Assembly (NCBI RefSeq): GCF_000737315.1
Contig: NZ_JMCB01000006.1
Location: forward strand, 973,820-1,037,819
DNA from: Hyalangium minutum
Lineage (GTDB): Bacteria; Myxococcota; Myxococcia; Myxococcales; Myxococcaceae
Length of the DNA stretch: 64,000 nt
Direction: 5' to 3'
Shown piece after piece: positions 14,441 to 49,135 of the stretch. Positions within the stretch are counted from its first letter, which is position 1, and each line of letters starts with the position of its first letter. The position numbers and the translations under genes are program-made. A model generated the notes under the pieces. The model saw only the letters and a list, made by a program, of their open reading frames with translations. It did not search any database and was not told the origin of the DNA.

Positions 14441-14545
14441 AGCTCGGGCAGTATGTTCAGCAGGTCACAGATTCACAGAACCCACGGGATTCATGGCCGA
14501 AAGGCCAGGGGAAAACCTGAGAGAGAGGGTACGGCCCGTGAGGGA

Positions 14546-15538: not shown

Positions 15539-15722
15539 GTCGAGCCACTGTAACCGGCGGAGAGGGCGCTCCGTACAGGTTGGTGAAACCACCTCACCAG
15601 ACAGGAGCCTACTCATGTGCATTCACTCGGTGGGCAGCGCTTCGTTAGAGTAGCCCGTGACTTCTTTCGGGCGACAGGTCCGCTACGACCAGCCTCCGCG
15701 TGAAGGTCCTCGTTCCTTCGCT

Positions 15723-16212
15723 TTGCGGCCATTTCGAAAACACGGGTTCGTTTCTGCCCTGTGGATGTTGGCAGCCGTCGCAGGCTGTGAAACGCCGAGC
15801 GGGACAACAGTTCCAGGTGCGGGACCCGCATCCGCCAAGTGGGAAGGCCCCCTGATGCCGGGCCCAGGTGGCGGGCAGGTCCGAACGACCATTTACTACG
15901 GGCCGTGGCAGTGCAATCAGCGGTGGATGGATTCCTGCCAGACGCATTGCGCCTCTGAAGGCCGCAAGCTCATGGGGTGCATGTGGCTGGCCGACATCAA
16001 AACGGAATGGCAGGGCAGGTACCCGGGACCGCCTGTCGCGGCGGGCGGACGCTACGCGGGATCTTCAGCGGGGAGGTTCTCCGACGAACGAGCGCAACGT
16101 GTTGCCCGTGCCGCCCGATGTTCATGGCGTTTTCACCGACGAGTACCCCATGTGCTACGCCGGAGGCAGCAGGTGGAGCACTGTGGGTCCAGACCTGCCC
16201 TACACGGATTGA
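15723..16212 (+). pseudogene. Lipoprotein HNH-type nuclease toxin, internally deleted and frameshifted
   Basis: Lipobox LAAVAGC and Cys-rich YYGPWQC..C...C....GCMWLADIK. At 16057 the sequence switches to the +1 frame: RDLQRGGSPTNERNVLPVPPDVH...YPMCY...PYTD*, an HNH-like tail lacking the preceding HH motif. Confidence 0.65.
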
Positions 16213-16223
16213 GATCCAGTTCC

Positions 16224-16694
16224 ATGAACGCTCTGCTCGAGGAGGTCTCGCGCCACCACTTTCCGAATCCACCTGCCACGCCAGAGCAAATCGAGGCGTT
16301 TGAGCGACGGATGGGCTGGCGCCTGGATCCCGAACTCCGAGCTTTCTATCTCCACTGTGATGGAGCGGCCCTCTTCAGGCGGCGCCCGGACGCGGACTAC
16401 CGCTTCCTGTCCTTGGCCGAGATCCAGCGAGCCAGAGTCGCCATCCGCGGCAAGGATGACGATTCGCGCGGCCCGGCCTCTATGTACACGATCTGCGATC
16501 TCCAGGACGGTGACTACATCTTGGTGGACATCAGCCGTCAGCAGGGCGGCTGCTACCCCATCCTCGATGGGTGGCACGAGGCATGGCCTGATCCGGAATA
16601 TTGCAAGCAAATCGCCCACTCCTTCTCCGGGTTCCTGGAGGGCGCTCTTCGGAGCGGGGGGAATTGGTTCTGGCTGCAACAGCGCGAATCATAA
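16224..16694 (+). CDS. SMI1/KNR4 (SUKH) family immunity protein
   Basis: PPATPEQIEAFERRMGWRLDPELRAFYLHCDGA...FLSLAEI...SFSGFLEGAL. Lies immediately after the toxin remnant. Confidence 0.9.
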   Translation: MNALLEEVSRHHFPNPPATPEQIEAFERRMGWRLDPELRAFYLHCDGAALFRRRPDADYRFLSLAEIQRARVAIRGKDDDSRGPASMYTICDLQDGDYILVDISRQQGGCYPILDGWHEAWPDPEYCKQIAHSFSGFLEGALRSGGNWFWLQQRES

Positions 16695-27694: not shown

Positions 27695-27852
27695 TCGTGC
27701 CCCTTCCATGCTCCCGAGTCTCGCCAAGCTGGTCGAGGACGCCAGGCGGACGCTGAGCCGGAGTCCGACGCATCCTGTCCCCGTTCCGAGTGGAACAGGC
27801 CTGTCCGTTTGGGGCTCCTGCGCCGCGAAGACAGTCCTCCGCCTAGGGTGCG

Positions 27853-28590
27853 TCACAACACGCGGGCGGCGCGGGCCTCCTCCAGCGTGTACTCCTGCAT
27901 CATGGTACCGAAGGGGCCTGTCTTCTGGATGAGCCACGCGCAAGAGCCCTGCGGCATGTAGAAGTCCTCCTCGAAGGGAGCCAGCCCCAGGTGGCGCAGG
28001 TAGTCCTTGAGCATCTCAAAGGTGAAGCGGTCCCTTACCCGGCGCTCCTGGTACTTCTCCACCTGCTCGAAGGGGAAGGGCTCACCTTCCTGGTCGAAGA
28101 CCCAGCGGCCTCCATCATTGGAAGCGCTCAGGGCGCGCACATAGTTGTGGATCTTCCCCGGCTGCTCCGGGCCGAACACATCCAGCATGACGGCACCATA
28201 GCGGCCTTGGTCCCCGCGCAGCGTGTGGGGCACGGCGACCACCCGCAGGCACCGGATGCTCAACCTCCGGGCCATGGAGCGCATGGGGCTGGCGGCATCC
28301 GTCCCGGTCCACTGGCTGGAGACATAGGCTGTCCAGGCGCTGCGCGTCGGGATGAACAGGTGCCGCTGGGTTTCTCCACCGTTCAGGGGCAGCAGGCTGG
28401 AGAGAACTTGCTCCAGGGTGCCCGAGACGGGGAGCACCTCCACGGTGATGCCACGAGGCGTCATCACCTCTCTCTCCCACGTGGCGAAGGCTTGCGCCGC
28501 CTGCTCCGCCCCCAACTCCAGAAAGCCCATCGTCGAGGTGACAGGCGCCCAGCGGTCCTCCAGCAGCAGACCCTTCATCTCTTGCGTCAT
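27853..28590 (-). CDS. Putative immunity protein (copy 1)
   Basis: 245 aa, directly downstream of the toxin. Near-identical paralogue at 40165-40902. Confidence 0.75.
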   Translation of the reverse strand: MTQEMKGLLLEDRWAPVTSTMGFLELGAEQAAQAFATWEREVMTPRGITVEVLPVSGTLEQVLSSLLPLNGGETQRHLFIPTRSAWTAYVSSQWTGTDAASPMRSMARRLSIRCLRVVAVPHTLRGDQGRYGAVMLDVFGPEQPGKIHNYVRALSASNDGGRWVFDQEGEPFPFEQVEKYQERRVRDRFTFEMLKDYLRHLGLAPFEEDFYMPQGSCAWLIQKTGPFGTMMQEYTLEEARAARVL

Positions 28591-28601
28591 TCAGGCTCGC
28601 C

Positions 28602-30497
28602 TCATTCCTCGGGGATGATGATCCGGATGATGATGGCTTTGGGGTCGTTGTTGGTGAGGCGCGACTGGTGTGCAGGGCCACGGCCCGAGGTGGGTGAGTC
28701 GTACTCCACCTGATAGCGCTGGCCCTGATAATCGAATTGCAGATCCGGCCGATTGATTCCCACGCGCTGACCATTCTTGAGCGTCAGTTGCTGCTGGTTC
28801 ACCCGAATGTTCTCGGCGTGTAGCACGTCCTCCAGGTACTTGATGTCCTCCTGGAGTTGAGCATTCTGCCTGGGGCTGGGGCTAATGGGACGGGTCGTCG
28901 GGCGTAGGCCTGGCACCTTCGGCTTGACGGTGACGTCCTGACGCAAGCGTGGGCCGGCTGGCACCTGCGGCGTTGGGTTCTTGCCCGTGAGCGCTTGAGC
29001 CAGTTCGGGTGAGGGCGCGAGGGTGCCCGGCGCCGGAGGGAGCGGTGCTGGCGCCGGAGCGGGTTCTGGAGCAGGCGCCACAGCTCTCGGCGGAGCGAGT
29101 GGAGCCTCCACCCTGCCAGGGCCCACCGGCTCCACCGGCTCCGGGACACCCCACCCGGGCACCGGCCGCGTGGCGGTCATCAACTTCCCAGCGGCCACTC
29201 CCACCGCAAGCGCTGTGAAGAACTCCTGGGCCGCGCCGAGCCGGGACACCTCCTGCTCGGTGAACATCTCCTGGCCACTGCCCATCTGCCACCCGCGCTC
29301 CAGCGCGAAGTGCAGCGGGTTGACATCCCTCGCCAGCCCATACACCCCCAGCAAGGCCTGAAGGGTGGCTGGGTGAGTCATGAAGTAGTGCTTGACGATT
29401 CTCCGCCGGTTCTCCCAGTGGGCATATCCCTCGGCGGCGGCGGCTCCCGTGCCCAGGCGCCGCTCCATGTCCTCGCGCTGCTCGGGGGTGAGGCGCTGTG
29501 GCGTCACCAACGGCCACATGCGGAGAGCCTCGGGCACCGTCTCCGCGCTCATGGCCTCGGCGTACTTGCGCTCCCACTGCGACAGCGGGTGGCTCCAGTG
29601 AGCCATGTCCTCCCAGGGGCCCGAGTTCCACCAGGCCTGGACGGCCCCGGGCTTCTGGAGCAGGAGAATCTGCTGAATCACGTCCCGCTCTGCGAAGGCG
29701 GTGAGCGCCACCTGCGAAGCAGCGGGCTCAAGCCCCGCCGTCCTCGCCTCCGCCGCGGAGGAGGGGCCTGGCTCACGTGGCGGCAAGGCGCCTTGTGGAC
29801 TCTGGGCGGATTGCTGCGCCCACGGGCGCTGAGGCGGGGCGAGGGCAGGCGTGCGGGACGGTGCGCCGAAGCCGAAGAGAAGACCCACCCCGAGGGAGAA
29901 CACTCCTTCGCCTTGCGCGAAGCGGGAGGGCGGGAACGCGTACACGCCCGAAAGGCCCACCTCCAGCCCGATGCCGCCACGGATGGCGTGCACTCCGGCT
30001 TCGCCGCCAGCGCGCAGCCGGGGAGGCCACCAGGAGCGGGGGGTAACTGCCGCTCCACCGAGGGCCTTGAAGTACAGCGGCCCCTCCCCCGTGAAGCGCG
30101 CCACCGCGTCGGTGGACAGCTCCCACGCTCCGGCGGAGGTGGCTGGGGGCAGCAAGCTCCAGCGCGCCCCGAGCCCCTGGCCTGCTTCCGACAAGCCCCA
30201 CAGGCTCACGCTGTACGAGGTGCGCGGTGCCCACGCGCTACCCAGTGCAGCGCCCCGGGAAACCTCTGCCCCCACCACGGCCCGCATCTGGCTCGTCTCG
30301 TCAGAGGCCTGTGCCCCGGGCGAGGCCAAGACGGCCAGCAACAAGAGGCTGACAGCCGCATGCCACCGCGAGGGTTGGCGCGCTCCCGGGCCCCTCATTC
30401 GGCAAACCCTTCGAGGGCGGTGCCTCCGGCGCTGGCGCCGAGCAACACAAGGGACAGCGCTCCGGCCTTCCAGAGAAGCCTCTGCCACGGCCAGCAT
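28602..30497 (-). CDS. Polymorphic toxin: signal peptide, 8-strand OM beta-barrel-like domain, helical linker, C-terminal PD-(D/E)xK-like nuclease (copy 1)
   Basis: Amphipathic strands ending GVGLLFGF, a Pro-rich linker, and a C-terminal RVNQQQ..GINRPDLQFDY.G.RY.VEYD. Confidence 0.75.
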   Translation of the reverse strand: MLAVAEASLEGRSAVPCVARRQRRRHRPRRVCRMRGPGARQPSRWHAAVSLLLLAVLASPGAQASDETSQMRAVVGAEVSRGAALGSAWAPRTSYSVSLWGLSEAGQGLGARWSLLPPATSAGAWELSTDAVARFTGEGPLYFKALGGAAVTPRSWWPPRLRAGGEAGVHAIRGGIGLEVGLSGVYAFPPSRFAQGEGVFSLGVGLLFGFGAPSRTPALAPPQRPWAQQSAQSPQGALPPREPGPSSAAEARTAGLEPAASQVALTAFAERDVIQQILLLQKPGAVQAWWNSGPWEDMAHWSHPLSQWERKYAEAMSAETVPEALRMWPLVTPQRLTPEQREDMERRLGTGAAAAEGYAHWENRRRIVKHYFMTHPATLQALLGVYGLARDVNPLHFALERGWQMGSGQEMFTEQEVSRLGAAQEFFTALAVGVAAGKLMTATRPVPGWGVPEPVEPVGPGRVEAPLAPPRAVAPAPEPAPAPAPLPPAPGTLAPSPELAQALTGKNPTPQVPAGPRLRQDVTVKPKVPGLRPTTRPISPSPRQNAQLQEDIKYLEDVLHAENIRVNQQQLTLKNGQRVGINRPDLQFDYQGQRYQVEYDSPTSGRGPAHQSRLTNNDPKAIIIRIIIPEE

Positions 30498-30599
30498 GTG
30501 TCACCCCTTCATGCGAGGAGGTGATCAGGTTAGAGGGCCGCCACGGAGAAGAGGAGGATCCGCCGGGTGGCACCCGTGCTTCGGCTCCAGCTCCCTTGT

Positions 30600-30696
30600 C
30601 GAAGCTGTTGGGGAGGGTGACGGGGCCGGGATTCTCGATGGCGGCGAGGGCTGCGCGTAACAGGGAGTAGAAGAGCGCGGCCACCTCGGTGCCTCG
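30600..30696 (-). pseudogene. IS66-family transposase C-terminal remnant
   Basis: The minus strand reads RGTEVAALFYSL|LRAALAAIENPGPVTLP, which resembles the IS66 TnpC tail with an internal deletion. Confidence 0.6.
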
Positions 30697-31533
30697 TTGG
30701 GAGAAGCTTGCCGCCCTGGAGGAATTCCTCTCCTACGAGTCCTTCAAAGAACTTCGCCTGCAGGTGCTGCCCCATCGGCGGGATTTCTTGTCGCCGGAGG
30801 ATCCCGGGGCCGCTGTCCGGATAGCGGGGCCCGGAATTTGGTCCGAACGATGGGGTCCACCTCAGCTATCAGCCGCCATGTCGTGGCGACGGCGGGCCAC
30901 TGCATCTGCAAGCGCAGGCAGGGAGCGTCGCCTGGTCAAGGGAGTCAAGCCATCATTGACGCGTCAGCCTGTTTCGAGGGCGCGAAGGTGGAGACGGTCT
31001 TCTATAAACCCCCGGTCGAGGAAGGGGCCCGGAATTTGGTCCGAACGATGGGGTCGCGGGGGAAGATCTACAAGGGCAGGGCCCGACCGCACCCCGCGTT
31101 GAAGGTCATGCTCGATGAACAGGGTCGCGTCATGTCGAGCCGTGCGGATCTCGCCCTCATCTTTCTGGAGAAGCCCCTGGAGTCTCCGGGCATTCCTCTG
31201 GCTGATGAGGACACCCGGGTGGGTGACTCCGTCATCATCGCGGGATATGGCTACGACGAAGTCGCTGACGTGTTCGGCTGGGAGCGCCGCTTCTGCACCA
31301 ACAAGATCACCCGGCTCTCGCTGACGGAGGATGAGCGGATCCTGATTGAGCAGCCGGGAGGGCATCAGTACAGGCAGGACAGTGGCGGACCCTGTCTTCG
31401 CCAGGGAGAGAAGGGGCCCGAGATTGTGGGGATCTCCAGCCGCTGGCTTGGAGAAGGAGCCGCCTGCACGAGCATTCATGGCCACCTTGATTGGCTGCGC
31501 GAGGAAGTCCGTCGTGCGGAAACACCTGATTGA
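30697..31533 (+). pseudogene. Trypsin-like (S1) serine protease with scrambled N-terminus
   Basis: Catalytic triad motifs TAGHC, ADLAL and QDSGGPC are present. There is no signal peptide, and an ectopic 32-bp copy precedes the His motif. Confidence 0.7.
30826..31055 (+). repeat. Exact 32-bp direct repeat GGGGCCCGGAATTTGGTCCGAACGATGGGGTC
   Basis: Copies at 30826-30857 and 31024-31055, 198 bp apart. Confidence 0.9.
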
Positions 31534-31591
31534 GGAAGGACGGTCGAACGATGACTCGATGGCAGGTGGCAGTCATCTGACGCTGCCTGAC

Positions 31592-31639
31592 TGCACAGGG
31601 GTGCTGGTTGCGCCTCGCGTTGTCGTGACGGCCGGCCAC
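31592..31639 (+). pseudogene. Second trypsin fragment
   Basis: CTGVLVAPRVVVTAGH followed by unrelated sequence. Confidence 0.55.
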
Positions 31640-31715
31640 CCCCTAAAGGCTGGGCATCTTCCGGGAGCCTCTGGGTATGATGGAGCCTCGACCCAAGAGG
31701 GGGGCTTGACGCGAG

Positions 31716-32522
31716 ATGGTGCCTCGGACGGCCTTGGTGAGGAACAATGTGCAGGTTCTGGGCAAGGGCCAGAGCCTGATCATGTTTGCCCACGGTTTTG
31801 GGAGCACGCAGGCCGTCTGGCAGGCGCAGGTGCAAGCCTTCGCGGAGACGCACCGCATCCTCCTGTTTGATCACGTGGGCGCCGCAGGCGGCAACCTGGC
31901 GGCCTACAGCCCCTACCGCTATGCGAGCGTGGAGGGCTACGCCGCGGACATGCTCGAGGTTCTGGAGGCGGTGGACGCCCGAGACGTCATCTATGTCGGG
32001 CACTCCATGAGCGGCATGGTGGGGTTGCTGGCGGGACTGGCCCGGCCCGAGCTCTTCCGGGGCATGGTCTTCATCAGCTCCTCGCCTCGCTACCTCAACG
32101 CTCCAGGCTATGTGGGAGGCTTCGAGCGGGCGGACCTGGATGCGCTCTATGCCTCCATGGAGGCGGACTTTGGCGCCTGGGCCAGTGGCTTTGCCCGGGC
32201 CGTGGTGGGCTCGTCCGCCACGCCCGAGCTGGCGGAGTCCTTCGCACGGTCGCTCGGCTCGCTCCGCCCCGATGTGGCGCTCGGCGTGGCGCGCGTCATC
32301 TTCGAGGCGGATCTGCGAGAGAAGGTGCCCAAGCTCTCGCTGCCCACCTGGATCCTCCAGCCGCGCAGCGACCTGGCCGTGCCTCGCGAGGTGGGGAGCT
32401 ATCTGGCGCACCACCTCCCTCAGGGCCAACTCGTCGTCGTGGACAGCGAGGGGCACCTGCCCCACCTCACCTCTCCTGGCCAGGTCAATGCCATCCTGGC
32501 GGAGATCCTCTCGGAACTCTGA
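31716..32522 (+). CDS. RsbQ/KAI2/D14-like alpha/beta hydrolase
   Basis: NNVQVLG..MFAHGFG..Q..W, YVGHSMSG (Ser), DLAVP (Asp), EGHLPHL (His). Confidence 0.92.
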   Translation: MVPRTALVRNNVQVLGKGQSLIMFAHGFGSTQAVWQAQVQAFAETHRILLFDHVGAAGGNLAAYSPYRYASVEGYAADMLEVLEAVDARDVIYVGHSMSGMVGLLAGLARPELFRGMVFISSSPRYLNAPGYVGGFERADLDALYASMEADFGAWASGFARAVVGSSATPELAESFARSLGSLRPDVALGVARVIFEADLREKVPKLSLPTWILQPRSDLAVPREVGSYLAHHLPQGQLVVVDSEGHLPHLTSPGQVNAILAEILSEL

Positions 32523-32527
32523 GCGCC

Positions 32528-35026
32528 ATGGCGGAAGCGTCTCCATCGCCCGGCGAGCGCTCACTGCCAGAGTGGGTGGCTGCCGCCGTGGCGGCGCTCT
32601 CCCCCAGGGATGGGAAGCAGCTGGAGCGCGTGCTGGAGGTCGCCCGGAGCGCCTGTGGGGCGGACCTGGCGCTGGCGCTTCGCCGGGTGGATGCCGTCAC
32701 GCTCTTCGAGCTGGGAGGCGCGCCCGCTCAACATCCGAGCCTGCCTCCGGTGGGAGAGTCCCTCTTCCGGGGCGTGCTGGGCGGGCAGGGCTGCTCCTTC
32801 TTCGAGCCCGAGCAGGCTGAGCCAGGGTGGCCTTACTCCCTTCGCGGGGCGGTGGCGCTCGTGCCCTGGGAGTCCGTGGAGGAGCGGCGCGGCGCCGTGC
32901 TGCTCGTGCGCCGGGGCACCCAGTCCTTCTCTCCGGACGAGCGCGGCCGGCTCGAGGCCCTGTGTGGGCTGCTGGTCACCGTCGCCCGCGAGAGTGACTT
33001 GGAGCGCCTGACGGCCGGGCTGCGCGAGCGGGTGGAGGCCATCTCTCACGCGCTCCCCTGCGGGCTCATCTTCCTGAACCCGCAGGAGGCCGAGGCATGG
33101 CTGAACGAGCCCGCGGCCGAGCTGCTCGGGCTCCCGGCGGGCAAGGCGCCCGCGCACCTCGTTGCCCAGGCCATGGCCGCGCTGCGCGAGCGCGCCGTGA
33201 ACCGCCAGGAGCTGGAGGTGAAGCTGGAGCACCTGTTCCGGGGAGGTGCCTCGGAGCTTCGGGACGTGCTGTGGCGCTTCGAGAACCCTCACCGCATCTT
33301 CTCCGTGTCCTGCGTGCTGGCCAGCCGAGGGCCCACGCGCGGCCGGCTCTGGGCCTTCCTCGACGTCACCCAAGCCCAGGACACGCTCGCGCTGCTGGAG
33401 CAGCAGAACCTCGCGCTGGAGGCCGCCCGGCGCGAGGCGGACGCTGCCAACGCCGCCAAGTCCCAGTTCCTGGCCACCATGAGCCACGAGATTCGCACGC
33501 CCATGAACGGGGTGCTCGGCATGACTCACCTCCTGCGGCGCACGCCCCTGTCCCAGGAGCAGCAGGAGTACGTGGACGTCATCCACACCAGCGGCGAGGC
33601 GCTGCTGACGATCATCAACGACATCCTCGACTTCTCGAAGATCGAAGCGGGTGCCCTGGAGCTCGACAGCGCGGCGTTCTCGCTGCGGCAGACCCTGGAC
33701 GAGTGTGTGCGTCTGCTGAGCCCCTCGGCCGAGGCGCGGGGGCTGTACTGCCGCCAGGAAGTCGAGCCCACCGTGCCGGACACGCTGGTGGGCGATCGGA
33801 TGCGGCTGCGGCAGATCCTCCTCAACCTCGTGGGCAATGCGCTGAAGTTCACGCACCAGGGCGGAGTGACTGTCCACGTGTCGCGAGGCGAGGCGCCAGC
33901 CTCGGGCCTGCCCTCCGAGGTGCGGGTGTGCTTCGCCGTGAGCGACACGGGCATCGGCATTCCCGCCGAGCGCATGGATCGGCTCTTCCGCACCTTCAGC
34001 CAGGTGGACTCCTCCACCAGCCGCCACTATGGGGGAACGGGCCTGGGGCTCGTCATCAGCCAGCGCCTCGCGCAGATGATGGAGGGCCACATCCACGTGC
34101 GGAGCACCGAGGGCGTGGGCTCCACGTTCACGCTCGAGGTGGTGCTGCAAGAGGGCTCGGAGGCCTCGCTCCCGCCCCGCACCGAGGTGGACGAGAGCCT
34201 GGGTGCCCGCCACCCGCTGCGCGTCCTCCTGGTGGAGGACAACCCCATCAACCAGAAGGTGAACCTGCGCGTCTTCCAGCGCCTGGGCTACGAGGCGCAC
34301 GTGGTGGGCAACGGGCTGGAGGCGCTCGCGGCCATGCGGGAGGCGGCCTATGACGTGGTCTTCATGGACGTCCACATGCCGCGCCTGGACGGCCTGGAGG
34401 CGGCCCGGCGGGTGCGCGCCGATGCGGCGGAGTACGGGTCGCCGTACATCGTCGCCATGACGGCGAGCGCGGTGAAGGGAGATCGCGAGCGCTGCCTCCA
34501 GGCGGGGATGAACGACTACGTGGCCAAGCCCGTGGAGTTCCCGATGCTCGCCGCGGCCTTGGAGCGGGCCGCCTTCGCCAGGGCCCAGGGGCTCTCTCTC
34601 TCTCTCTCTCCTGCTCCGCTGCAGGAACTCGCCTCCCCGGAGCCATCCTCCGCCAACGAGGCGCCGGTGCTCCAGAGGGAGATCCTCCAGCGGCTGGAGC
34701 TGCTCGTCGGCAACAACCGGGAGGAGCTCGGTACATTGACGCGGGACTTCCTGAAGAACGCCCGTAAGCACCAGGAGGCCCTGCTCCAAGGCGTCCTGGA
34801 CAGGGACGCGCGGGCGTTGGGGGAGCATGCCCACAGCCTCCGGTCGAGCGCGGCGCTCTTTGGGGCCTCCCAGCTGTCGCGCTTCTGCGAGGAACTCGAA
34901 CAGTGCGCGGAGGCGGGCTTCTCGGATCAGCTGAAGGCGCTGGCCAAGTCTACGGCGCAAGCTTTCGAGCAGGCGCGGGCGGCGCTCGAGGAGGCCGTGC
35001 CCGAGGCCTGTCCCGCGCGGAGCTGA
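32528..35026 (+). CDS. Hybrid histidine kinase (GAF/PAS-like, HisKA, HATPase, REC, Hpt)
   Basis: KSQFLATMSHEIRTPMNG, NLVGNALKFT, GGTGLGL, VFMDVHMP, AHSLRSSA. Confidence 0.92.
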   Translation: MAEASPSPGERSLPEWVAAAVAALSPRDGKQLERVLEVARSACGADLALALRRVDAVTLFELGGAPAQHPSLPPVGESLFRGVLGGQGCSFFEPEQAEPGWPYSLRGAVALVPWESVEERRGAVLLVRRGTQSFSPDERGRLEALCGLLVTVARESDLERLTAGLRERVEAISHALPCGLIFLNPQEAEAWLNEPAAELLGLPAGKAPAHLVAQAMAALRERAVNRQELEVKLEHLFRGGASELRDVLWRFENPHRIFSVSCVLASRGPTRGRLWAFLDVTQAQDTLALLEQQNLALEAARREADAANAAKSQFLATMSHEIRTPMNGVLGMTHLLRRTPLSQEQQEYVDVIHTSGEALLTIINDILDFSKIEAGALELDSAAFSLRQTLDECVRLLSPSAEARGLYCRQEVEPTVPDTLVGDRMRLRQILLNLVGNALKFTHQGGVTVHVSRGEAPASGLPSEVRVCFAVSDTGIGIPAERMDRLFRTFSQVDSSTSRHYGGTGLGLVISQRLAQMMEGHIHVRSTEGVGSTFTLEVVLQEGSEASLPPRTEVDESLGARHPLRVLLVEDNPINQKVNLRVFQRLGYEAHVVGNGLEALAAMREAAYDVVFMDVHMPRLDGLEAARRVRADAAEYGSPYIVAMTASAVKGDRERCLQAGMNDYVAKPVEFPMLAAALERAAFARAQGLSLSLSPAPLQELASPEPSSANEAPVLQREILQRLELLVGNNREELGTLTRDFLKNARKHQEALLQGVLDRDARALGEHAHSLRSSAALFGASQLSRFCEELEQCAEAGFSDQLKALAKSTAQAFEQARAALEEAVPEACPARS
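34592..34610 (+). repeat. (CT)9C simple sequence repeat in the REC-Hpt linker
   Basis: ctctctctctctctctctc, currently in frame (LSLSLS). Confidence 0.85.
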
Positions 35027-35117
35027 GCCCGGGAGTGGGTGGATCTGAGAAGGTTCCTTCGATTCCCTGTAGAGTCACCGCCCGCTCGGCATGAGCCGGC
35101 GTGGGAGGTGCCGCACG

Positions 35118-35468
35118 ATGCACGGTATCGGGACAGCGCTCTGCCTCTTCATTGTCGCCGAACACGTGGCCTTCATGGTCCTGGAGATGGTCTTCTGGCA
35201 GAAGCCGCTGGGCCGGGCCCTCTTCAAAAGGTCGGTCGAGGAAGCGCGGACCTCCGCGAGCCTGGCCGCGAACCAGGGGCTCTACAATGGCTTCCTCGCC
35301 GCTGGGCTGGCGATGGCGGTCTTTCTGGGCGAGGGCCGCTTCACGGCGTTCTTCCTGGCCTGCGTCGTGGTGGCGGGAACCTTCGCGGGCATCACGGTGA
35401 GCCGCGGCATCTTCTTCGTCCAGGCAGCGCCGGCCCTCCTCGCGGGCCTCGTGCTGTTCGTCTCATAG
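35118..35468 (+). CDS. DUF1304 membrane protein
   Basis: AEH..F..LEM..W...LAANQGLYNGFLAAGL...VQAAPALL. Confidence 0.9.
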   Translation: MHGIGTALCLFIVAEHVAFMVLEMVFWQKPLGRALFKRSVEEARTSASLAANQGLYNGFLAAGLAMAVFLGEGRFTAFFLACVVVAGTFAGITVSRGIFFVQAAPALLAGLVLFVS

Positions 35469-35480
35469 AGCGATAGCGCC

Positions 35481-36842
35481 GTGACCCACCCCACCATCGA
35501 GCGCCACGCGCGCCATGTGAACCCCGCCTTCGTGAAGCTGCTGGGAGTGCTCGGCTATGGCCGGGTGTTTACGCGGGCGCGGGATGTGTGGCTCTGGGAT
35601 GATCAGGAGCGGCAGTACCTCGACTTCCTGGCGGGGTTCGGCTCGGTGAACCTGGGCCACAACCACCCGAGGCTCATGGCGCGGCTGCAGCGCTTCCTGG
35701 CCGAGGACGCGCTCCACTTCTGCCACGTGGGCCTGACGGAGCACTCGGCGCTGCTGGGCGAGGCACTCTGCCAACGGCTCGATGCTCCGCTGGAGGTGGT
35801 GCTGCTGGCGTCCAGCGGCGGCGAGGCGGTGGAGGCCGGCATGAAGCTGGCCCGCGCGGCCACGCGGCGCTCGGCCTTCGTGTTCTGCGAGGGAGGCTTT
35901 CACGGGACGAGCTTCGGCACGCTCTCGATGATGGGCTCCGAGCGCATGCGCAAGCCCTTCGAGCCGCTGCTCGCGGGTTGCCACCGCGTGCCCTTCGGGG
36001 ACCTGGAGGCACTGGAGCGGGTGCTCCGGCGCGAGAAGGTCGCGGCGTTCGTGGTGGAGCCGCTGCTGGCCGAGGGCGGCGTCGTCTCTCCGCCTCCGGG
36101 GTATTTAAAGGAGGCACAGGCGCTGTGCCGCAAGCACGGGGCCCTGCTGGTGCTGGACGAGGTGCAGACGGGGCTGGGCCGCCTGGGCCGGCGCTTCGCG
36201 TACCAGGGCCAGGGCTTCGTGCCGGATGTGCTGGTGCTGGCCAAGGCGCTGAGCGGCGGAGCGGTGCCGGTGTCCGCGGCCATCACCTCCACGGAGATTC
36301 ACGGGCGCGCCTACGGAGGGACGGAGCGGTTCGATCTGCACAGCACCACGTTCGGTGGCAACGCGCTGGCGTGCACGGCGGCCATGGAGACGCTGGCCAT
36401 CGTGGATGACGAGGGGCTCGTGGCGAACGCCGCCGCGAGAGGGACCGAGCTGCTGGAGGGCCTGCGGAAGCGGCTCGCGGGGCATCCGCTGGTGCGGGAG
36501 ATCCGCGGCGAGGGATTGCTGGTGGGCGTGGAGCTGGGGCCCACCGAGAGCGGGCTGCTCAACCGCCTGGTTCCGAGCCTGGTGGGACAGGTGTCGGAGA
36601 AGGTCTTCGGACAGTGGGCGGCGCTGCGGCTGTTGGAGGAGGGCATCGTGTGCCAGCCAGCCTCGCACCGGTGGGACGTGCTGCGGCTGGAGCCGCCGCT
36701 GACGGTGAAGTCCGAGGAGATTCAGCGGGTGGTGGATGCGGTGGCGCGCATCCTGGGGGACTACACGGGGCTGGTGCCGCTGCTGCGCGATGTGGTGGCG
36801 AGGGTGGGCGAGCAGCGCAAGCGGGAAGGAGCGTTCCGATGA
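35481..36842 (+). CDS. Class III PLP aminotransferase (ornithine-AT / HpnO-like)
   Basis: FHGTSFG, EPLLAEGG, DEVQTGLGR, PDVLVLAKALSGG, STTFGGN. Confidence 0.9.
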   Translation: MTHPTIERHARHVNPAFVKLLGVLGYGRVFTRARDVWLWDDQERQYLDFLAGFGSVNLGHNHPRLMARLQRFLAEDALHFCHVGLTEHSALLGEALCQRLDAPLEVVLLASSGGEAVEAGMKLARAATRRSAFVFCEGGFHGTSFGTLSMMGSERMRKPFEPLLAGCHRVPFGDLEALERVLRREKVAAFVVEPLLAEGGVVSPPPGYLKEAQALCRKHGALLVLDEVQTGLGRLGRRFAYQGQGFVPDVLVLAKALSGGAVPVSAAITSTEIHGRAYGGTERFDLHSTTFGGNALACTAAMETLAIVDDEGLVANAAARGTELLEGLRKRLAGHPLVREIRGEGLLVGVELGPTESGLLNRLVPSLVGQVSEKVFGQWAALRLLEEGIVCQPASHRWDVLRLEPPLTVKSEEIQRVVDAVARILGDYTGLVPLLRDVVARVGEQRKREGAFR

Positions 36843-37858
36843 GCCTGGCCGAGCTTCGGCGGGACGCGCGCTTCGCGGCGGGGTTGGTGGCGCGGCGGCC
36901 CTTCCAGGTGCTGGTGCAGGTGACGAACCGCTGCAACGCCACGTGCTCCTTCTGCGACTTCTGGCCCAACGGCGCGCACCCTCGCGAGGAGCTGACGGCG
37001 GACGACTTCCGCAAGCTGTCGGCCGAGCTGGCGAAGATCGGCACATTCCTCATCTCCATCGAAGGCGGGGAGCCGTTCGTCCGGCAGGACCTGGTGGAGA
37101 TCGTCCGGGCGTTTGGAGAGCACCACGTGCCGCTGCTGTACACGAACGGTTGGTTCGTGACCGAGGAGAAGGTGAAGGCGCTGTTTGCGGCGGGACTGGC
37201 GCAGGTGGGCGTGTCCATCGACTACTCGGAGGCGGCGCGGCACGACGCCAAGCGCGGACTGAAGGGCGGCACGGAGCGGGCGTGGCAGGCGGTGGACCTG
37301 TTCCGGAAGCACGCGCCGCACGGGAACCGTCAAGTGCACGTGATGACGGTGCTGATGCGCGACAACCAGAACGACTTGGAGGCGCTGCTAAAGCAGAGCG
37401 CCGCGCATGACGTGGGCCACTGCCTGACGCTGATCTCCACGCAGGGGTACCGGCGCGGGAAGGACTCGCCGGACGGTGTGCCGGACGTGTCGCTGTCACC
37501 GCAACTGCTGTCGCTGTGGAAGCAGTACCCGCACTTCCGCATGTTCCGCGACTACCTGGGGAGCGTGGACACGTTCCTCGCGGACCGAAGCCAGCTCCCG
37601 GCGTGCCAAGCGGGGACGCAGAGCTTCAACATCGATCACCTGGGGAACGTGTCCCCGTGCATCGAGAAGATCGATCGCCGGTTCGGGAACGTGCGGGACG
37701 AGCCGCTGGCGGCCATCCTCCAGCGTATGCGCGAGGGCGGGACGGCGCGGGGCTGCCAGGACTGCTGGACGCTCTGCCGGGGCTTCAACCAGAGCCTCGG
37801 GCAGGGGGGCACACTGAAGGGCTGGATGGACCTGAGCACGCGCATGCGCTCGGCGTGA
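36839..37858 (+). CDS. Radical SAM protein with SPASM/twitch-type C-terminus
   Basis: CNATCSFC, EGGEPF, YTNG, CQAG..PCIE..CQDCWTLC. Overlaps the aminotransferase stop. Confidence 0.9.
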   Translation: MSLAELRRDARFAAGLVARRPFQVLVQVTNRCNATCSFCDFWPNGAHPREELTADDFRKLSAELAKIGTFLISIEGGEPFVRQDLVEIVRAFGEHHVPLLYTNGWFVTEEKVKALFAAGLAQVGVSIDYSEAARHDAKRGLKGGTERAWQAVDLFRKHAPHGNRQVHVMTVLMRDNQNDLEALLKQSAAHDVGHCLTLISTQGYRRGKDSPDGVPDVSLSPQLLSLWKQYPHFRMFRDYLGSVDTFLADRSQLPACQAGTQSFNIDHLGNVSPCIEKIDRRFGNVRDEPLAAILQRMREGGTARGCQDCWTLCRGFNQSLGQGGTLKGWMDLSTRMRSA

Positions 37859-38267
37859 GGTGCCGCGCGCTCAGGCTTGGGGCCCAGGAGCTACTGGATC
37901 GACCTTACCCATTGCTTCGCTGGCTTGAACTCGGTGGAGGAAGCCGGGGAGGAGAGTTTGAGAGGGGGCCAGCGGCGCCGCTGCTGAAGCTCATCCACGA
38001 GGCTGCGGCTCGTTGCCTCACCTGCTTCCTCACGCGGGAAGGTGGAGCAGCGCGCTAGATGCAACCCAGCAGGCAGGACAGTGGCAGCGGCGCGGCGTTA
38101 CGTGGGGAGGGAGCAGGGACGTGGCGAGCGCCCAGGCGTCAGCGTCGGGCGCGAGGCTGCCCCCGCAGGGGGGCTGGAGGTGAAGCACGGGCGCCGCCCG
38201 GCGGATCCTCCTCTTCTCCGTGGCGGCCCTCTAGCCTGATCACCTCCTCGCATGAAGGGGGTGACAC

Positions 38268-40154
38268 ATGCTGGCCGTGGCAGAGGATTCTCTGGAAGGC
38301 CAGAGCGCTGTCCCTTGTGTTGCTCGGCGCCAGCGCCGGAGGCGCCGCCCTCGAAGGGCTTGCCGAATGAGGGGCCCGGGAGCGAGTCAGCCCTCGCGGC
38401 TCCATGCGGCTGTCAGCCTCTTGCTCATGGCAGTCTTCGCCGCGCCCGGGGCGCACGCCTCCGGAGAGACAAGCCAGATGCGGGCCGTTGTGGGGGCGGG
38501 TATCTCTCAGGGCACCGCGCTGGGCAGCCCCTGGGCGCCGCGCACCTCGTACAGCGTGAGCCTGTGGGGCCTGTGGGAAGCAGGCCAGGGGGTGGGGGCG
38601 CGCTTGACGTTGCTGCCCCCGGCCACCTCCGCCGGAGCGTGGGAGCTGTCCACGGACGCGGTCGCGCGCTTCACGGGTGAGGGGCCGCTGTACTTCAAGG
38701 CCCTCGGTGGAGTGGCCGTCACCCCCCGCCCCTGGTGGCCTCCGCGGCTGCGCGCCGGGGGCGAAGTCGGGGTGCACGCCATCCGTGGAAGCATTGGCCT
38801 GGAGGTGGGCGTTGGTGGCGTGTACTCGTTCCCGCCCTCGCGGCTCTCGCAAGGCGAAGGGGTGCTCTCCCTCGGGGTGGGAATCCTCTTCGGCTTCGGC
38901 ACACCGTCCCGCACGCCTGCTCTCGTCCCGCCTCAGCGCCCGTGGGCGCAGCAGTCCGCTCACAGTCCACAAGGCGCCTTGCCACCACGTGGCCCAGGCT
39001 CCTCATCCGCAGCGGAGGCGAGGACGGAGGGGCTTGCGCCCGCTGCTTCGGAGGTGGCGCTCACCCCCTTCGGAGAGCGGGACGTGATTCAGCAGATTCT
39101 GCTGCTCCAGAAACCCGGGGCCGTCCAGTCCTGGTGGGCCTCGGGCCCCTGGGAGGACATGGCTCACTGGAGCCACCCGCTGTCGGAGTGGGAGCGCAAG
39201 TACGCCGAGGCCATGAGCGCGGAGACGGTGCCCGAGGCCCTCCGCATGTGGCCGCTGGTGACGCCCGAGCGCTTCACCCCCGCGCAGCGCGAGGACATGG
39301 AGCGGCGCCTGGGCACAGGAGCCGCCGCCGCCGAGGGGTATGCCCACTGGGAGAACCGGCGGAGAATCGTCAAGCACTACTTCATGACGCACCCAGCAAC
39401 CCTTCAAGCCTTGCTGGGGGGGTATGGGCTGGCGAGGGATGTCAACCCGCTGCACTTCGCGCTGGAGCGCGGGTGGCAGATGGGCAGTGGCCAGGAGATG
39501 TTCACCGAGCAAGAGGTGTCCCGGCTCGGCGCGGCCCAGGAGTTCTTCACGGCGCTGGCGGTGGGAGTGGCCGCTGGGAAGTTGATGACCGCCACGCGGC
39601 CGGTGCCCGGGTGGGGTGTCCCAGAGCCGGTGGGCCCTGGCAAGGTGGAGGCTCCGCCCGCTCCGGCGAGAGCTGTGGCGCCTGCTCCAGAACCCGCTCC
39701 GGTGCCAGCACCGCTCCCTCCGGCGCCGGGCACCCTCGCGCCCTCACCCGAACTGGTTCAAGCGCTCACGGGCAAGAACCCAACGCCGCAGGTGCCCGCC
39801 GGCCCACGCTTGCGTCAGGACGTCACCGTCAAGCCGAAGGTGCCAGCCCTACTCGAGACAACCCGTCCCATTAGCCCCAGCCCCAGGCAGAATGCTCAAC
39901 TCCAGAGGGATATCGAGTATGTGAAGAATGAGCTACTCGCCGAGAACATTCGGGTGAACCAGCAGCAACTCACGCTGGAGAACGGCCAGCGCGTGGGAAT
40001 CAACAGGCCGGACCTGCAATTCGATTACAAGGGCCAGCGCTATCATGTGGAGTACGACTCACCCACCTCGGGCCGTGGTCCTCGCCACCAGTCGCGCCTC
40101 ACCGCCAACGACCCGGAAGCCATCATCATCCGGATCATCATGCCTGAGGAATGA
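38268..40154 (+). CDS. Polymorphic toxin, beta-barrel plus PD-(D/E)xK-like tip (copy 2)
   Basis: Paralogue of 28602-30497, with RPDLQFDYKGQRYHVEYD. Confidence 0.75.
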   Translation: MLAVAEDSLEGQSAVPCVARRQRRRRRPRRACRMRGPGASQPSRLHAAVSLLLMAVFAAPGAHASGETSQMRAVVGAGISQGTALGSPWAPRTSYSVSLWGLWEAGQGVGARLTLLPPATSAGAWELSTDAVARFTGEGPLYFKALGGVAVTPRPWWPPRLRAGGEVGVHAIRGSIGLEVGVGGVYSFPPSRLSQGEGVLSLGVGILFGFGTPSRTPALVPPQRPWAQQSAHSPQGALPPRGPGSSSAAEARTEGLAPAASEVALTPFGERDVIQQILLLQKPGAVQSWWASGPWEDMAHWSHPLSEWERKYAEAMSAETVPEALRMWPLVTPERFTPAQREDMERRLGTGAAAAEGYAHWENRRRIVKHYFMTHPATLQALLGGYGLARDVNPLHFALERGWQMGSGQEMFTEQEVSRLGAAQEFFTALAVGVAAGKLMTATRPVPGWGVPEPVGPGKVEAPPAPARAVAPAPEPAPVPAPLPPAPGTLAPSPELVQALTGKNPTPQVPAGPRLRQDVTVKPKVPALLETTRPISPSPRQNAQLQRDIEYVKNELLAENIRVNQQQLTLENGQRVGINRPDLQFDYKGQRYHVEYDSPTSGRGPRHQSRLTANDPEAIIIRIIMPEE

Positions 40155-40164
40155 GGGGGCCTGA

Positions 40165-40902
40165 ATGACGCAAGAGATGAAGGGACTGCTGCTGGAGGAC
40201 CGCTGGGCGCCTGTCACCTCGACGATGGGCTTTCTGGAGCTGGGGGCGGAGCAGGCGGCGCAAGCCTTCGCCACGTGGGAGAGAGAGGTGATGACGCCCC
40301 GTGGCATCACCGTGGAGGTGCTCCCCGTCTCGGGCACCTTGGAGCAAGCCCTCTCCAGCCTGCTGCCTCTGATCAGTGGGGAGAGGCGGCGGCGCCTGTT
40401 CATCCCGACGCGCAGCGCCTGGACAGCCTACGTCGCCGACCAGTGGACTGGGACGGATGCCGCCAGCCCCATGAGCGCCATGGCCCAGAGGCTAGGCATC
40501 CGGTGTCTGCGGGTGGTCGCCGTGCCCCACACGCTGCGCGGGAACCAAGGCCGCTATGGTGCCGTCATGCTGGATGTGTACGGCCCGAAGCAGCCGGGGA
40601 AACTCCACAACTATGTGCGCGCCCTGGGCGCTTCCAATGATGGAGGCCGCTGGGTCTTCAGCAATGTGGGTGAGCCCTTTCCCTTCGAGCAGGTGGAGAG
40701 GTATCAGGCGCGCCGGGTGACGGACCGCTTCACCTTCGAGATGCTCAAGGACTATCTGCGCCACCTGGGGCTGGCTCCCTTCGACGAGGACTTCTACATG
40801 CCTCCCGGCTCCTGCGCGTGGCTCCTCCAAAAAACAGGCCCCTTCGGCACCGTCATGCGGGAGTACACGCTGGAGGAGGCCCGCGCCGCCCACGTGTTGT
40901 GA
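40165..40902 (+). CDS. Putative immunity protein (copy 2)
   Basis: Paralogue of 27853-28590, starting 10 nt after the toxin stop. Confidence 0.75.
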   Translation: MTQEMKGLLLEDRWAPVTSTMGFLELGAEQAAQAFATWEREVMTPRGITVEVLPVSGTLEQALSSLLPLISGERRRRLFIPTRSAWTAYVADQWTGTDAASPMSAMAQRLGIRCLRVVAVPHTLRGNQGRYGAVMLDVYGPKQPGKLHNYVRALGASNDGGRWVFSNVGEPFPFEQVERYQARRVTDRFTFEMLKDYLRHLGLAPFDEDFYMPPGSCAWLLQKTGPFGTVMREYTLEEARAAHVL

Positions 40903-41163
40903 CGCACCCCAGACGGAGGACTGTCTTCGCGGCGCGCCCGGACGGCAGCCATGGTCGCCGCGTTGGAGTGCGCACCCAAGCCCACTACGCCTTCGCGAGG
41001 GCGGGACTGCGCCGCAGCAGGCCCGCTCGTGACTGGTACGCCAATTTCGAGGCCTACCTCATGTACGGCCACGTCACTCCTGCCGAATGGAAGGAAGCCG
41101 CCCAGTGGGAGTGGCAGCTCTACAACCTGCCCAGGACGGGCCCCCAAAATGGGTAAGGTCGAA

Positions 41164-47121: not shown

Positions 47122-47304
47122 TCAGACTCCCACTTCTTGTGGAGCGTTCCTGGGAAGCTTTTCCTCGGAGGGCGTTTCAGCCTGCTTCGGTGGGTGAGTA
47201 TCCAGCGCCTCAAGGCCGCGGGCCTGCCGCATCCATTGCGGCCAATTACGAATCTCCGCCTTCACGTCCTCTATCTGCGCTTTGAGCCAGCCCGGTTTGC
47301 TCAC
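47122..47304 (-). CDS. 60-aa small protein overlapping the deaminase 3' end
   Basis: GTG start preceded by GAGGAGAG. MSKPGWLKAQIEDVKAEIRNWPQWMRQARG is amphipathic-helix-like. Confidence 0.55.
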   Translation of the reverse strand: MSKPGWLKAQIEDVKAEIRNWPQWMRQARGLEALDTHPPKQAETPSEEKLPRNAPQEVGV

Positions 47305-48934
47305 TGGAGCTCTCCTCACGTGATTGCACCGCGCCCCTGAATTTAAGGCCAATGGCCTCCACAATGGAGGCGAATCGAAAGAGATATTCGGCCTCCATAG
47401 CCCAGTACACAGTGTAGTTTCCTGGATGTTTCGGGACCACCTTGGTCGGTACCCAGGGGAGCACACTGCCGTCTTTGGCCTTCCGGTCCCCCTTGAGCTC
47501 GAAGAATTCCGTGTACTTCCTGGGGGCAATCCCCACGAATGGCGAAAAGATGACCTTGCCAGTGGAGCTCCCTTCGGACCCCTCTAAGGTGATGGAGTCC
47601 GAGTAGAGGTCAGCCGCGAGGCTCTTGGGATAAGGGTCGATGTAGACGACCCGCGAGATGCCCGCCGCGATGATATGCCGCGCACATTCGTGACATGGGA
47701 ACGTCGTGACGTACATCACGCTGCCTTGTACGGATACGCCGCGTCGAGCTGCCTCCATGAGCGCCGCCATCTCTGCGTGGACGGGACGCATGAACTCGAT
47801 GATGTTCATCACCCTGGAGTCGCGCCAGGGACCCGGTGCGACCTCGTCCTTCTTGAGAACCCGCTCTCGCAGTTCCTGGACATCCAGCTCGCGGTATGTG
47901 TCTGCCAGCCACTTCTCTTTCTGCAAGAGCCGGAGGAGTTCGGAGATGAGGTCATGCTTGTGCCGGTCGCTGGTGTCCTCGCCCCCCACAAAGTCACGTC
48001 CATCCGGCTCGTCGTCCTCCCAGTACAAGCCTCCACCCGCTTTGGGCACCTCATTGGTACCTACCGCGAGGAGTTCTCCCGAGCGAGAGGTGATGGCAGA
48101 ACCGACTTGCCGGCCCAATGCCGCGGAGCGCATGGCGGCGGCCTTCGCGAAGAAGATGCCCCATTCACTTCGTGTTGGCGTGTGGAAGGGGTGACCGAAG
48201 ACAAGGCGTACGAAGCGCTTGATACTGCGCTCCATCTCCTTGGGGTTTGTCGCGTCGATGAAGACATCTGCCTCGGGAAAAGCCCGTTGGACGTCTTGGC
48301 CCATAGGCTCGTCCAGGTCTCGCTCATCGGTGCGTACGAGAGCCTCGGCTTCGCTGCGAAACTCCATCGAAAGCCATAAACCCCGGCTCTCGGAGATGCT
48401 CCTGGAGAGCTTATCGACACGTTTGTCTCGCGGGGCATAGGCGGACAGGAGGAAGAAGGCGGGGCCGTAGATCTTTCTGAGCGACTCCACTTCTTCCCGT
48501 CGCTTGAGCGAGTGCAGGATGAACGCACGCCGCGTGTTGCGGCGATCGGCCCTGATCATGTTGTCTCGTTCCTGCCGGATGGCGCTCAGGGCCAGCCACG
48601 CCATGGCATCCGCACACTTCATCTTCCGGCGCAGCTCCGTCCCAGCCTGCATGTGTTCTTTGTAGTAGCGGAGCTTGTCTCCACTCAGGCTCAGCGGGCT
48701 ATCGAGCCCCTCGATCTCGTGCAGCAACGACGAGAGGCGGATGGTCCGCGCCTCGTAGTTCGCCTCAGCCATCAGCGCAGTAGAGAGCGCCTTGGCGACG
48801 GCAGCCAAGTCTGTCCCGATGGCGCCCACGAGGGCAATGACGAGCTCAGGATCGGAACTCGCGGCTCGCCGGTTGAGTTCGTCCTTGTCCGCCTGGCTCT
48901 GCGAATCTTCATGACCCATGCCGTCATCCCCCAT
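47246..48934 (-). CDS. Anti-phage dCTP deaminase (P-loop kinase-like plus deaminase; AvcD-like)
   Basis: LVIALVGAIGT, HSLKRREEV..LR.IYG, SAALGRQVG, GTNEVPKAGGGLYW, VHAEMAAL, TTFPCHECA, VVYIDPYPKS. Lower GC than the flanks. Confidence 0.92.
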   Translation of the reverse strand: MGDDGMGHEDSQSQADKDELNRRAASSDPELVIALVGAIGTDLAAVAKALSTALMAEANYEARTIRLSSLLHEIEGLDSPLSLSGDKLRYYKEHMQAGTELRRKMKCADAMAWLALSAIRQERDNMIRADRRNTRRAFILHSLKRREEVESLRKIYGPAFFLLSAYAPRDKRVDKLSRSISESRGLWLSMEFRSEAEALVRTDERDLDEPMGQDVQRAFPEADVFIDATNPKEMERSIKRFVRLVFGHPFHTPTRSEWGIFFAKAAAMRSAALGRQVGSAITSRSGELLAVGTNEVPKAGGGLYWEDDEPDGRDFVGGEDTSDRHKHDLISELLRLLQKEKWLADTYRELDVQELRERVLKKDEVAPGPWRDSRVMNIIEFMRPVHAEMAALMEAARRGVSVQGSVMYVTTFPCHECARHIIAAGISRVVYIDPYPKSLAADLYSDSITLEGSEGSSTGKVIFSPFVGIAPRKYTEFFELKGDRKAKDGSVLPWVPTKVVPKHPGNYTVYWAMEAEYLFRFASIVEAIGLKFRGAVQSREESSSEQTGLAQSADRGREGGDS

Positions 48935-49135
48935 GCTGCCATCATGGACTCTTGGGCTTCGCCTGGACCCTACTACTTCGTGGCGTGAGCAGCAGCTACG
49001 TAGAGGCAATCGCGAAGTCTCGTCTTGCCTCTCGGAGAGCGAAGTCCTCAGACGCAGTGATATCGTCCGGCCGATACCATGAGGACGACGATGCAGAGGC
49101 CCACGCGGTGCTCACGGCTGGGGCGTCATTAGCCC

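Follow-up and report, generated by a model that had tools for sequence, protein, structure and literature searches.

Two inverted cassettes in Hyalangium minutum are probably paralogous polymorphic toxin–immunity operons with a predicted outer-membrane barrel anchor

Introduction

Why do two diverged, inverted copies of a two-gene cassette bracket a short block of other genes in Hyalangium minutum, and what do the cassettes encode? The DNA analysed here, referred to as the window, is the final 64 kb of the 1,037,819-bp contig JMCB01000006.1 of H. minutum DSM 14724, represented by one assembly; a contig position equals the window position plus 973,819, on the same strand. The left copy is termed arm L and the right copy arm R, and each consists of a gene for a large protein (toxL or toxR) followed by a gene for a 245-residue protein (immL or immR). 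Two further copies, C and D, lie elsewhere on the contig. A preliminary description had taken the arms for toxin–immunity cassettes and had inferred an invertible segment and a substrate for allele shuffling of kin-discrimination toxins. Our analysis indicates, with a probability of about 0.7, that the arms are paralogous polymorphic toxin–immunity operons whose toxins are barrel-anchored, and that their inverted layout is incidental and not a switch.

A close point of comparison is offered by the myxobacterial SitA proteins, lipoprotein toxins with family-specific escort domains that are delivered by TraAB outer-membrane exchange; SitB, an accessory protein with a type-I signal and a predicted β-barrel, is encoded just upstream of sitA (PMC5562445, PMC8546572). 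H. minutum is among the species of a traAB allele survey (PMC6372800).

Results

Two outward-facing operons form the arms of an inverted repeat

Repeat search resolved arms L and R into four contiguous inverted segments, 92–93% complementary, with small indels between them. Arm L has 2,779 nt and arm R 2,770 nt, enclosing 7,567 nt. A VWA gene (~27,600) lies to the left of arm L and an SDR gene (~41,200) to the right of arm R. Global alignment with the flanks revealed sharp ends, with an identity of 79–99% per 100 nt inside the arms compared to ~35–47% outside. Each arm contains two open reading frames (ORFs), both pointing outward and separated by an intergenic gap of 10–11 nt. A leader of ~200 nt ahead of the first gene and a tail of ~33 nt after the second belong to each arm as well. 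Two inverted, diverged and outward-facing cassettes that include non-coding DNA are thus present, as first described. The 5′ half, however, is not the conserved half that it was held to be: L and R are 79–92% identical per 100 nt in the barrel-coding 5′ part, 92–99% in the middle (29,000–29,650) and 84–91% in the tip. Besides L and R, no third cassette copy was found in the 64-kb window. About 220 differences separate the two arms, which makes repeat collapse during assembly implausible and agrees with the earlier judgement that an assembly artefact is unlikely.

A scan for promoter and terminator consensus sequences found no promoter and was uninformative. The leader contains a hairpin (TCACCTCC...GGGGTGA) at 30430–30460 (−) and 38300–38335 (+), which is conserved in L, R and D; it showed zero covariation and no Rfam match, and is not evidence of a structured RNA.

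The C-terminal tip and the 245-residue protein travel together

The four arm proteins, as well as the isolated barrel, core and tip of the large protein, had no match in scans with Pfam, NCBIfam and PADLOC. Sequence searches of the PDB, which used the tip and profiles of the immunity protein and of the full toxin, returned nothing usable; a RecA row had no passing stretch and was disregarded. The 115-residue C-terminal tip was searched exhaustively with HMMER over 1.84 billion representatives, yielding 611 matches. They lie 0–7 residues from the C-terminus of carriers that range from ~130 to 3,706 residues and include Rhs/YD proteins and many short carriers; in an SpvB/TcdB/RHS carrier, a PT-TG pre-toxin domain immediately precedes the tip. 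Moreover, homologues of the 245-residue protein are encoded directly downstream of two Rhs-tip toxins (loci L138 and L139), with identities of 39% (E 1e-40) and 32% (E 4e-23), and the neighbouring genes at these two loci are quite different.

Since the tip and the 245-residue protein travel together across delivery modules, they behave as a toxin–immunity pair, an assignment that sequence comparison strongly supports. In the general sense the cassettes fit a polymorphic toxin system, as the tip is joined to different delivery modules and these to different tips, and the putative immunity gene co-travels with the tip regardless of the delivery module. The earlier assignment of the arms as toxin–immunity cassettes is borne out by the occurrence of the tip on Rhs and Tc-like carriers with 245-residue homologues downstream of the Rhs-tip toxins. 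Both operons, L and R, are intact, and the ratio of nonsynonymous to synonymous substitution rates (dN/dS) of 0.3–0.4 in both genes indicates purifying selection and hence that both are functional.

The large protein joins a predicted outer-membrane barrel to a toxin module

The toxL product comprises, in order, a Sec-type signal, an eight-stranded outer-membrane barrel, a linker, a helical core, a Pro-rich linker and the toxin tip. The signal ends in an AxA cleavage site (AQA↓SD or AHA↓SG), and neither toxL nor toxR encodes a single cysteine. The barrel was modelled by AlphaFold2 with eight strands at a predicted local distance difference test score (pLDDT) of 80–91, and it terminates in an aromatic residue (...LLFGF). 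Structural similarity search using Foldseek retrieved NspA, Ail, OmpX, the N-terminal domain of OprF (OprF-N) and the transmembrane domain of OmpA, with a probability of 1.0 and a template modelling score on the target of 0.57–0.64. The barrel is accordingly modelled as a member of the eight-stranded OmpX/OmpA transmembrane class, and by analogy with OmpA the portion that follows an even-stranded barrel should be periplasmic. Residues 38–175 thus resemble OmpA and OmpX in predicted fold, and the whole protein resembles them in placing an N-terminal barrel before a periplasmic C-terminal part, whereas it differs in having no sequence-family match and in carrying a toxin module instead of a peptidoglycan-binding domain.

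The core was modelled at a pLDDT of 90–96, preceded by a disordered linker and followed by a disordered Pro-rich one. All invariant columns of a 56-sequence family alignment fall in this core. Distant relatives keep the core and have an N-terminus made up of a lipobox (LAGC/LVAC) and a Cys-rich region, and their tips are swapped for a YwqJ-like deaminase (PF14431), an AHH-like motif or other domains. In addition, the barrel is joined to other tips without the core, and a protein of 4,287 residues has the core placed between its Rhs shell and a TNT toxin. The core-bearing representatives in the cluster look-up are metagenome singletons.

The tip is predicted to adopt a PD-(D/E)xK-like fold

From a deeper alignment, the tip was modelled by AlphaFold2 at a pLDDT of 90.1 and a predicted template modelling score of 0.83, with an α-β-β-β-α-β topology (H26–41, E46–50, E70–74, E77–84, H92–101 and E106–111). 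The invariant D69, the Asp of RPD, starts β2, and the invariant E82, the Glu of EYD, lies in β3. The Foldseek neighbours are nearly all PD-(D/E)xK nucleases, namely Bax1, the R2 RLE domain, RecU, FAN1/VRR_NUC, SdaI, MGME1 and McrC, each of them a weak match individually; the model displays the PD-(D/E)xK core fold. Compared to the PD-(D/E)xK and Tox-REase toxins, the tip has the same predicted fold, with an invariant Asp after Pro at β2 and an invariant Glu in β3, but it possesses PD...ExD instead of ExK, and neither Tox-REase nor any other Pfam model matched it even at E up to 10. The tip is likely, but unproven, to be a nuclease. The nuclease tip of the preliminary description is supported only at the level of the modelled fold and its structural neighbours.

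The copies are mosaics within a dispersed family

Counted by the source names of homologues, H. minutum has at least six cassettes, four of which (L, R, C and D) are on the contig of the window and were aligned. The four have a common 3′ end; a ~190-nt leader is found in L, R and D, and only its last ~45 nt in C. Their identity is mosaic, with R and C 98% identical where L and R are 83%, and L and D 96% identical where L and C are 78%. The three quartet site patterns among them occupy 50, 32 and 16 sites and are clustered along the sequence (64 adjacent-same pairs versus 37.6 ± 4.4 expected, p ≤ 1e-4). These observations support recombination within the family, by homologous recombination or gene conversion.

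Arms L and R have a synonymous divergence (dS) of 0.19 overall, varying from 0.05 to 0.31 between domains, which equals the dS of 0.187 between L and D, even though D is 220 kb away. For both immL and immR the closest matches are found among the alleles of other samples (up to 93%), whereas the two are 88% identical to each other. Given the equal dS and the closer alleles elsewhere, L and R did not arise by recent duplication and are not a privileged pair for exchange; of the allele shuffling proposed earlier, the mosaicism holds for the family at large, and the special pairing of L with R is not supported. A GENECONV-style longest-run test on L and R gave short runs only, mostly in the leader, and no recent long conversion tract. 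The arms have several perfect tracts of 50–90 nt in common, the longest being 90 nt, and site patterns specific to L and R occur in the leader, in the Pro-linker and towards the 3′ end of the immunity gene.

H. minutum and H. versicolor carry their cassettes at non-orthologous sites. In two metagenomic strains the cassette adjoins either a tyrosine integrase and an HTH_17 gene, with an Imm11 gene nearby (L142 7732–9140), or a DDE_3 transposase (L143 3910–4788), and mobile elements probably seed new cassette copies. All three cassette pairs that could be placed on a common contig, L/R, C/D and an H. versicolor pair (L140/L141), face outward (minus then plus), at spacings of 7.6 kb for L/R, ~30 kb and ~120 kb.

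Two observations concern the surroundings of the copies. Cassette D (L056 8216–12202, contig ~781.5–785.5 kb) lies directly beside dnaA, followed by rpmH-rnpA-yidD-yidC, and probably sits at the replication origin region. The trypsin-like peptidase beside arm L is 46% identical (E 1e-65) to the product of L057 10960–11943, just downstream of cassette C, so that such a neighbour is present at two of the four cassettes on this contig.

The enclosed block shows few features of an invertible switch

Recombinational inversion systems, such as the sap locus of Campylobacter fetus and the invertase-driven shufflons, have an invertible segment that holds a single promoter, or a dedicated recombinase that acts at short sites, and flipping switches expression. 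The H. minutum locus is similar to these systems in that homologous genes facing opposite ways bracket a segment of a few kb. However, its arms have their own leaders, no recombinase gene was found in the ORFs scanned and one orientation is documented.

It is unlikely that the 7.6-kb block functions as an invertible segment, with L and R serving as a dedicated allele-shuffling device for kin-discrimination toxins. The long inverted repeats, with their perfect tracts of 50–90 nt, would be adequate substrates for RecA, the family is demonstrably mosaic with its L/R-specific patterns, and outward-facing pairs recur. On the other hand, the other two outward pairs have spacings of 30 and 120 kb, which means that the bracketing of a small block is not conserved, and neither the relatedness of the copies, with L as close to D as to R and the nearest immunity alleles in other samples, nor the lack of long identical tracts points to such a device. 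In the functional sense, the claim of an invertible segment is not supported: no recombinase, integrase or transposase domain was found in the Pfam-scanned ORFs across the 64-kb window, the scans covering large coding-like ORFs, so the dedicated recombinase of a programmed switch is lacking there; each arm has its own conserved leader of ~200 nt, for which reason a flip would not be expected to switch expression or change the expressed gene; and the base composition fits the present orientation. Inversion of 30599–38165 is possible but unevidenced.

As to composition, the GC skew at third codon positions (GC3 skew) is +0.078 for the enclosed plus-strand genes, compared to +0.060 and +0.108 for the outside genes of both orientations. 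A frequently flipping block would tend to zero skew, and the value thus fits the present orientation, providing weak evidence for a stable one in view of the large scatter from gene to gene. The left-arm genes (27853–30398, −) have a coding-strand GC3 skew of +0.05 and +0.08, like the right arm, and 9 of the 11 other minus-strand genes in the window have a negative skew (−0.03 to −0.48). The composition of the left arm follows the gene family, not the local strand.

Other origins of the arms

A local inverted duplication too young to have decayed, or an assembly artefact, would account for the proximity of the copies and for their common leader and tail sequences. It is nevertheless very improbable: the dS between the arms is no lower than that between L and the distant D, ~220 differences have accumulated, the partner arm is more distant than alleles from other samples, and the two operons, both intact, evolve under purifying selection.

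Equally remote is the idea that a composite mobile element, with the arms as its ends, moves the enclosed genes, or that each cassette is the passenger of a mobile element. The integrase and transposase genes beside cassettes of other strains and the non-orthologous sites in the two Hyalangium species would fit it, whereas the window has no transposase or integrase in the ORFs scanned and no tRNA, the cassette ends are ragged in that the leader is present in L, R and D and not in C, and the enclosed block as a unit was found nowhere else in the collections scanned.

Least probable of all, the large protein would be an OmpA-like envelope protein with a housekeeping C-terminal domain and no toxin, for which one can cite the missing family annotation and the conservation of the 245-residue protein, unusual for an immunity protein (82–93% identity among >100 matches), but Rhs, Tc-like and many other carriers have the tip, invariably at their very C-terminal end, it co-occurs with the 245-residue protein across delivery systems, and anchor, core and tip are swappable.

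The enclosed genes and other features of the window

The genes of the enclosed block are not conserved as a unit: only the aminotransferase with the radical SAM gene and, separately, the hydrolase with the kinase gene recur elsewhere (Table 1). A genome scan with the aminotransferase located its pair with the radical SAM protein in four Hyalangium/Archangiaceae metagenome-assembled genomes (MAGs), and nothing else of the block. A metagenome scan with the hybrid kinase gave nothing closer than 61%, and no locus syntenic to the arm–block–arm arrangement was found in the genome and metagenome collections scanned. The aminotransferase also recurs, at 64–69% amino acid identity, in MAGs of Pyrinomonadaceae and Planctomycetes. 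The distribution of the aminotransferase and radical SAM genes suggests a mobile two-gene module. As listed, the radical SAM ORF overlaps the aminotransferase gene by 229 nt, and its true start is therefore probably later.

Further away in the window, a 587-residue ORF (47246–49009, −) in the stretch of lowest GC content (~0.60) contains cytidine-deaminase and MafB19-like deaminase domains and is a candidate further polymorphic toxin. A SUKH-1 (SMI1/KNR4) immunity-type protein (15657–16694, +) is encoded near a 1,669-residue ORF that has no Pfam match (9455–14464, −), and the two may form a further toxin–immunity locus. The window also encodes an eCIS_core (DUF4157) protein (60277–60981, −), with a domain typical of the N-termini of contractile-injection-system effectors, and a 1,606-residue protein (699–5519, −) with WD40 repeats, a Roc/Ras-type GTPase domain and a metallophosphatase domain.

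Table 1. Coordinates of the arms, their genes and modules, the enclosed genes and the related copies (window positions unless stated otherwise).
Feature	Position	Strand	Basis and remarks
Arm L (leader, toxin gene, immunity gene, ~33 nt tail)	27820–30598	−	Repeat search, alignment
immL (245-residue cytoplasmic protein, inferred cognate immunity)	27853–28590	−	Begins 11 nt past the toxL stop
toxL (598-residue form starting MRGPG)	28602–30398	−	Longest ORF to 30497 (631 residues from first possible start)
toxL C-terminal tip (115 residues, RVNQQQ...RVGINRPD...EYD...RG..H..R...ND), predicted PD-(D/E)xK-like fold	28605–28949	−	HMMER, AlphaFold2, Foldseek
toxL helical core (residues ~236–412), pre-toxin/escort-like	29163–29693	−	Family alignment, AlphaFold2
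toxL barrel (residues 38–175), predicted eight-stranded outer-membrane β-barrel (OmpX/Ail/NspA/OmpA transmembrane class)	29874–30287	−	AlphaFold2, Foldseek
toxL leader, probable promoter region	30399–30598	−	Common to R and copy D; copy C has only the last ~45 nt
Enclosed block, all genes on plus strand	30599–38165	+	
Trypsin-like peptidase	30697–31533	+	
Alpha/beta hydrolase	31716–32522	+	
Hybrid histidine kinase with REC and Hpt	32528–35026	+	
DUF1304 protein	35091–35468	+	
Class-III aminotransferase	35481–36842	+	
Radical SAM/SPASM protein	36614–37858	+	
Arm R (content as arm L)	38166–40935	+	Repeat search, alignment; ~92% identical to L
toxR (595-residue form)	38367–40154	+	Longest ORF from 38268 (628 residues); 88% amino acid identity to toxL
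toxR C-terminal tip, family as in toxL	39807–40151	+	dN 0.083, dS 0.286 versus L
immR (245 residues)	40165–40902	+	88% amino acid identity to immL
Copy C	contig ~749–751 kb	−	
Copy D	contig ~781–784 kb	+	Adjoins dnaA-rpmH-rnpA-yidC

Discussion

We propose that the two arms are paralogous copies of a toxin–immunity operon, expanded in Hyalangium, that acts as follows. The toxin would be exported through its Sec-type signal peptide and, according to the predicted structure, anchored in the outer membrane by the N-terminal OmpX/OmpA-like barrel, so that the core, the Pro-rich linker and the 115-residue tip would hang on the periplasmic face, as the topology of an even-stranded barrel suggests. 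The 245-residue cytoplasmic protein would be the cognate immunity, judging from its conserved linkage with the tip across delivery systems, and its neutralisation of the toxin is putative. As their mosaicism shows, the copies have exchanged segments with each other and with a cross-strain allele pool, by homologous recombination or gene conversion. RecA-type recombination between the 8%-diverged arms could flip the block from time to time, joining the barrel and core of one copy to the tip of its partner and leaving every tip beside its own immunity gene. The inverted arrangement of the two operons, 7.6 kb apart, is most likely incidental. A flip would not be a programmed switch and would leave expression unchanged. 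For the step into the target cell, our leading guess is outer-membrane exchange, as for SitA toxins, and a role in kin discrimination is suggested by analogy.

Several points weigh against this reading. Toxic and immunity activities are putative for every part of the cassettes, being read from sequence. The structural matches of the tip are individually weak, the best having a probability of 0.94 and the best E-value being 0.028, and its third motif residue is an Asp (EYD) and not the classical Lys of ExK. The promoter is placed inside each arm by assumption, a small or atypical recombinase gene could escape scans of large coding-like ORFs, and the case for no inversion is indirect and comes from one assembly. 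Finally, the outward orientation of three out of three pairs, albeit a small sample, hints that cassette orientation may not be random.

Six SitA families with N-terminal escort domains have reportedly been defined. The window cassettes are similar to SitA/SitI in being myxobacterial and multi-copy, with a conserved N-terminal delivery part, a C-terminal toxin and an immunity gene next in the operon; a downstream cognate immunity gene is among the features by which SitA toxins are recognised, and the cassettes have its putative counterpart. Both systems tether the toxin to the outer membrane on its inner side, for the window toxins by predicted topology, and cassettes lie beside mobile-element genes in some strains. 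Moreover, the alleles vary inside a non-modular tip, as in SitA4/6/7 (PMC5562445, PMC8546572). Despite these similarities, the window toxins are not lipoproteins: they were ruled out as SitA lipoproteins by the complete lack of Cys, the Sec-type AxA site and a lipobox in none of 65 close homologues. They gave no match to TIGR02269 (SitA6), the one model seen under this name in NCBIfam, and the core-sharing lipoproteins align weakly with no more than its first ~60 positions, at 13–24 bits against a cut-off of 85.75. Instead of a lipid, the anchor is predicted to be an integral eight-stranded barrel, as SitB is predicted to be (PMC5562445), and on the models it is conceivable that the window toxin is a SitB–SitA-like fusion.

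Compared to the Rhs/YD and Tc-like toxins, the cassettes have the 115-residue tip and the immunity family in common with them, and the core is also found between an Rhs shell and a TNT toxin. However, Pfam detected neither RHS/YD repeats nor PAAR, PT-TG or another known delivery domain in the window proteins, and their delivery must therefore differ. The window proteins were likewise set aside as Rhs/YD toxins, as they have no RHS/YD shell by Pfam.

More tentatively, and on balance doubtfully, the cassettes might represent a new class of myxobacterial kin-discrimination toxins in which a fused SitB-like barrel replaces the lipid anchor of SitA, with a new escort/pre-toxin core that lipoprotein and Rhs toxins have as well, and a new, widespread pair of PD-(D/E)xK-like tip and 245-residue immunity protein. 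Integral outer-membrane proteins would then also be exchange cargo, and recombination among the dispersed copies, sometimes by inversion between outward-facing pairs, could make new self-identity barcodes.

The inverted-repeat geometry matters less than the proteins, being a potential site of genome instability and not a demonstrated switch. The analysis adds a previously unannotated putative toxin tip and immunity family that extends across Rhs, Tc-like and myxobacterial toxins, as well as a new pre-toxin core. The predicted fusion of an integral outer-membrane barrel to a toxin would be an architecture outside the lipoprotein rule that defines SitA toxins. Should such proteins pass from cell to cell, outer-membrane exchange would carry a wider range of cargo, and myxobacteria would have larger self-identity repertoires, than has been estimated.

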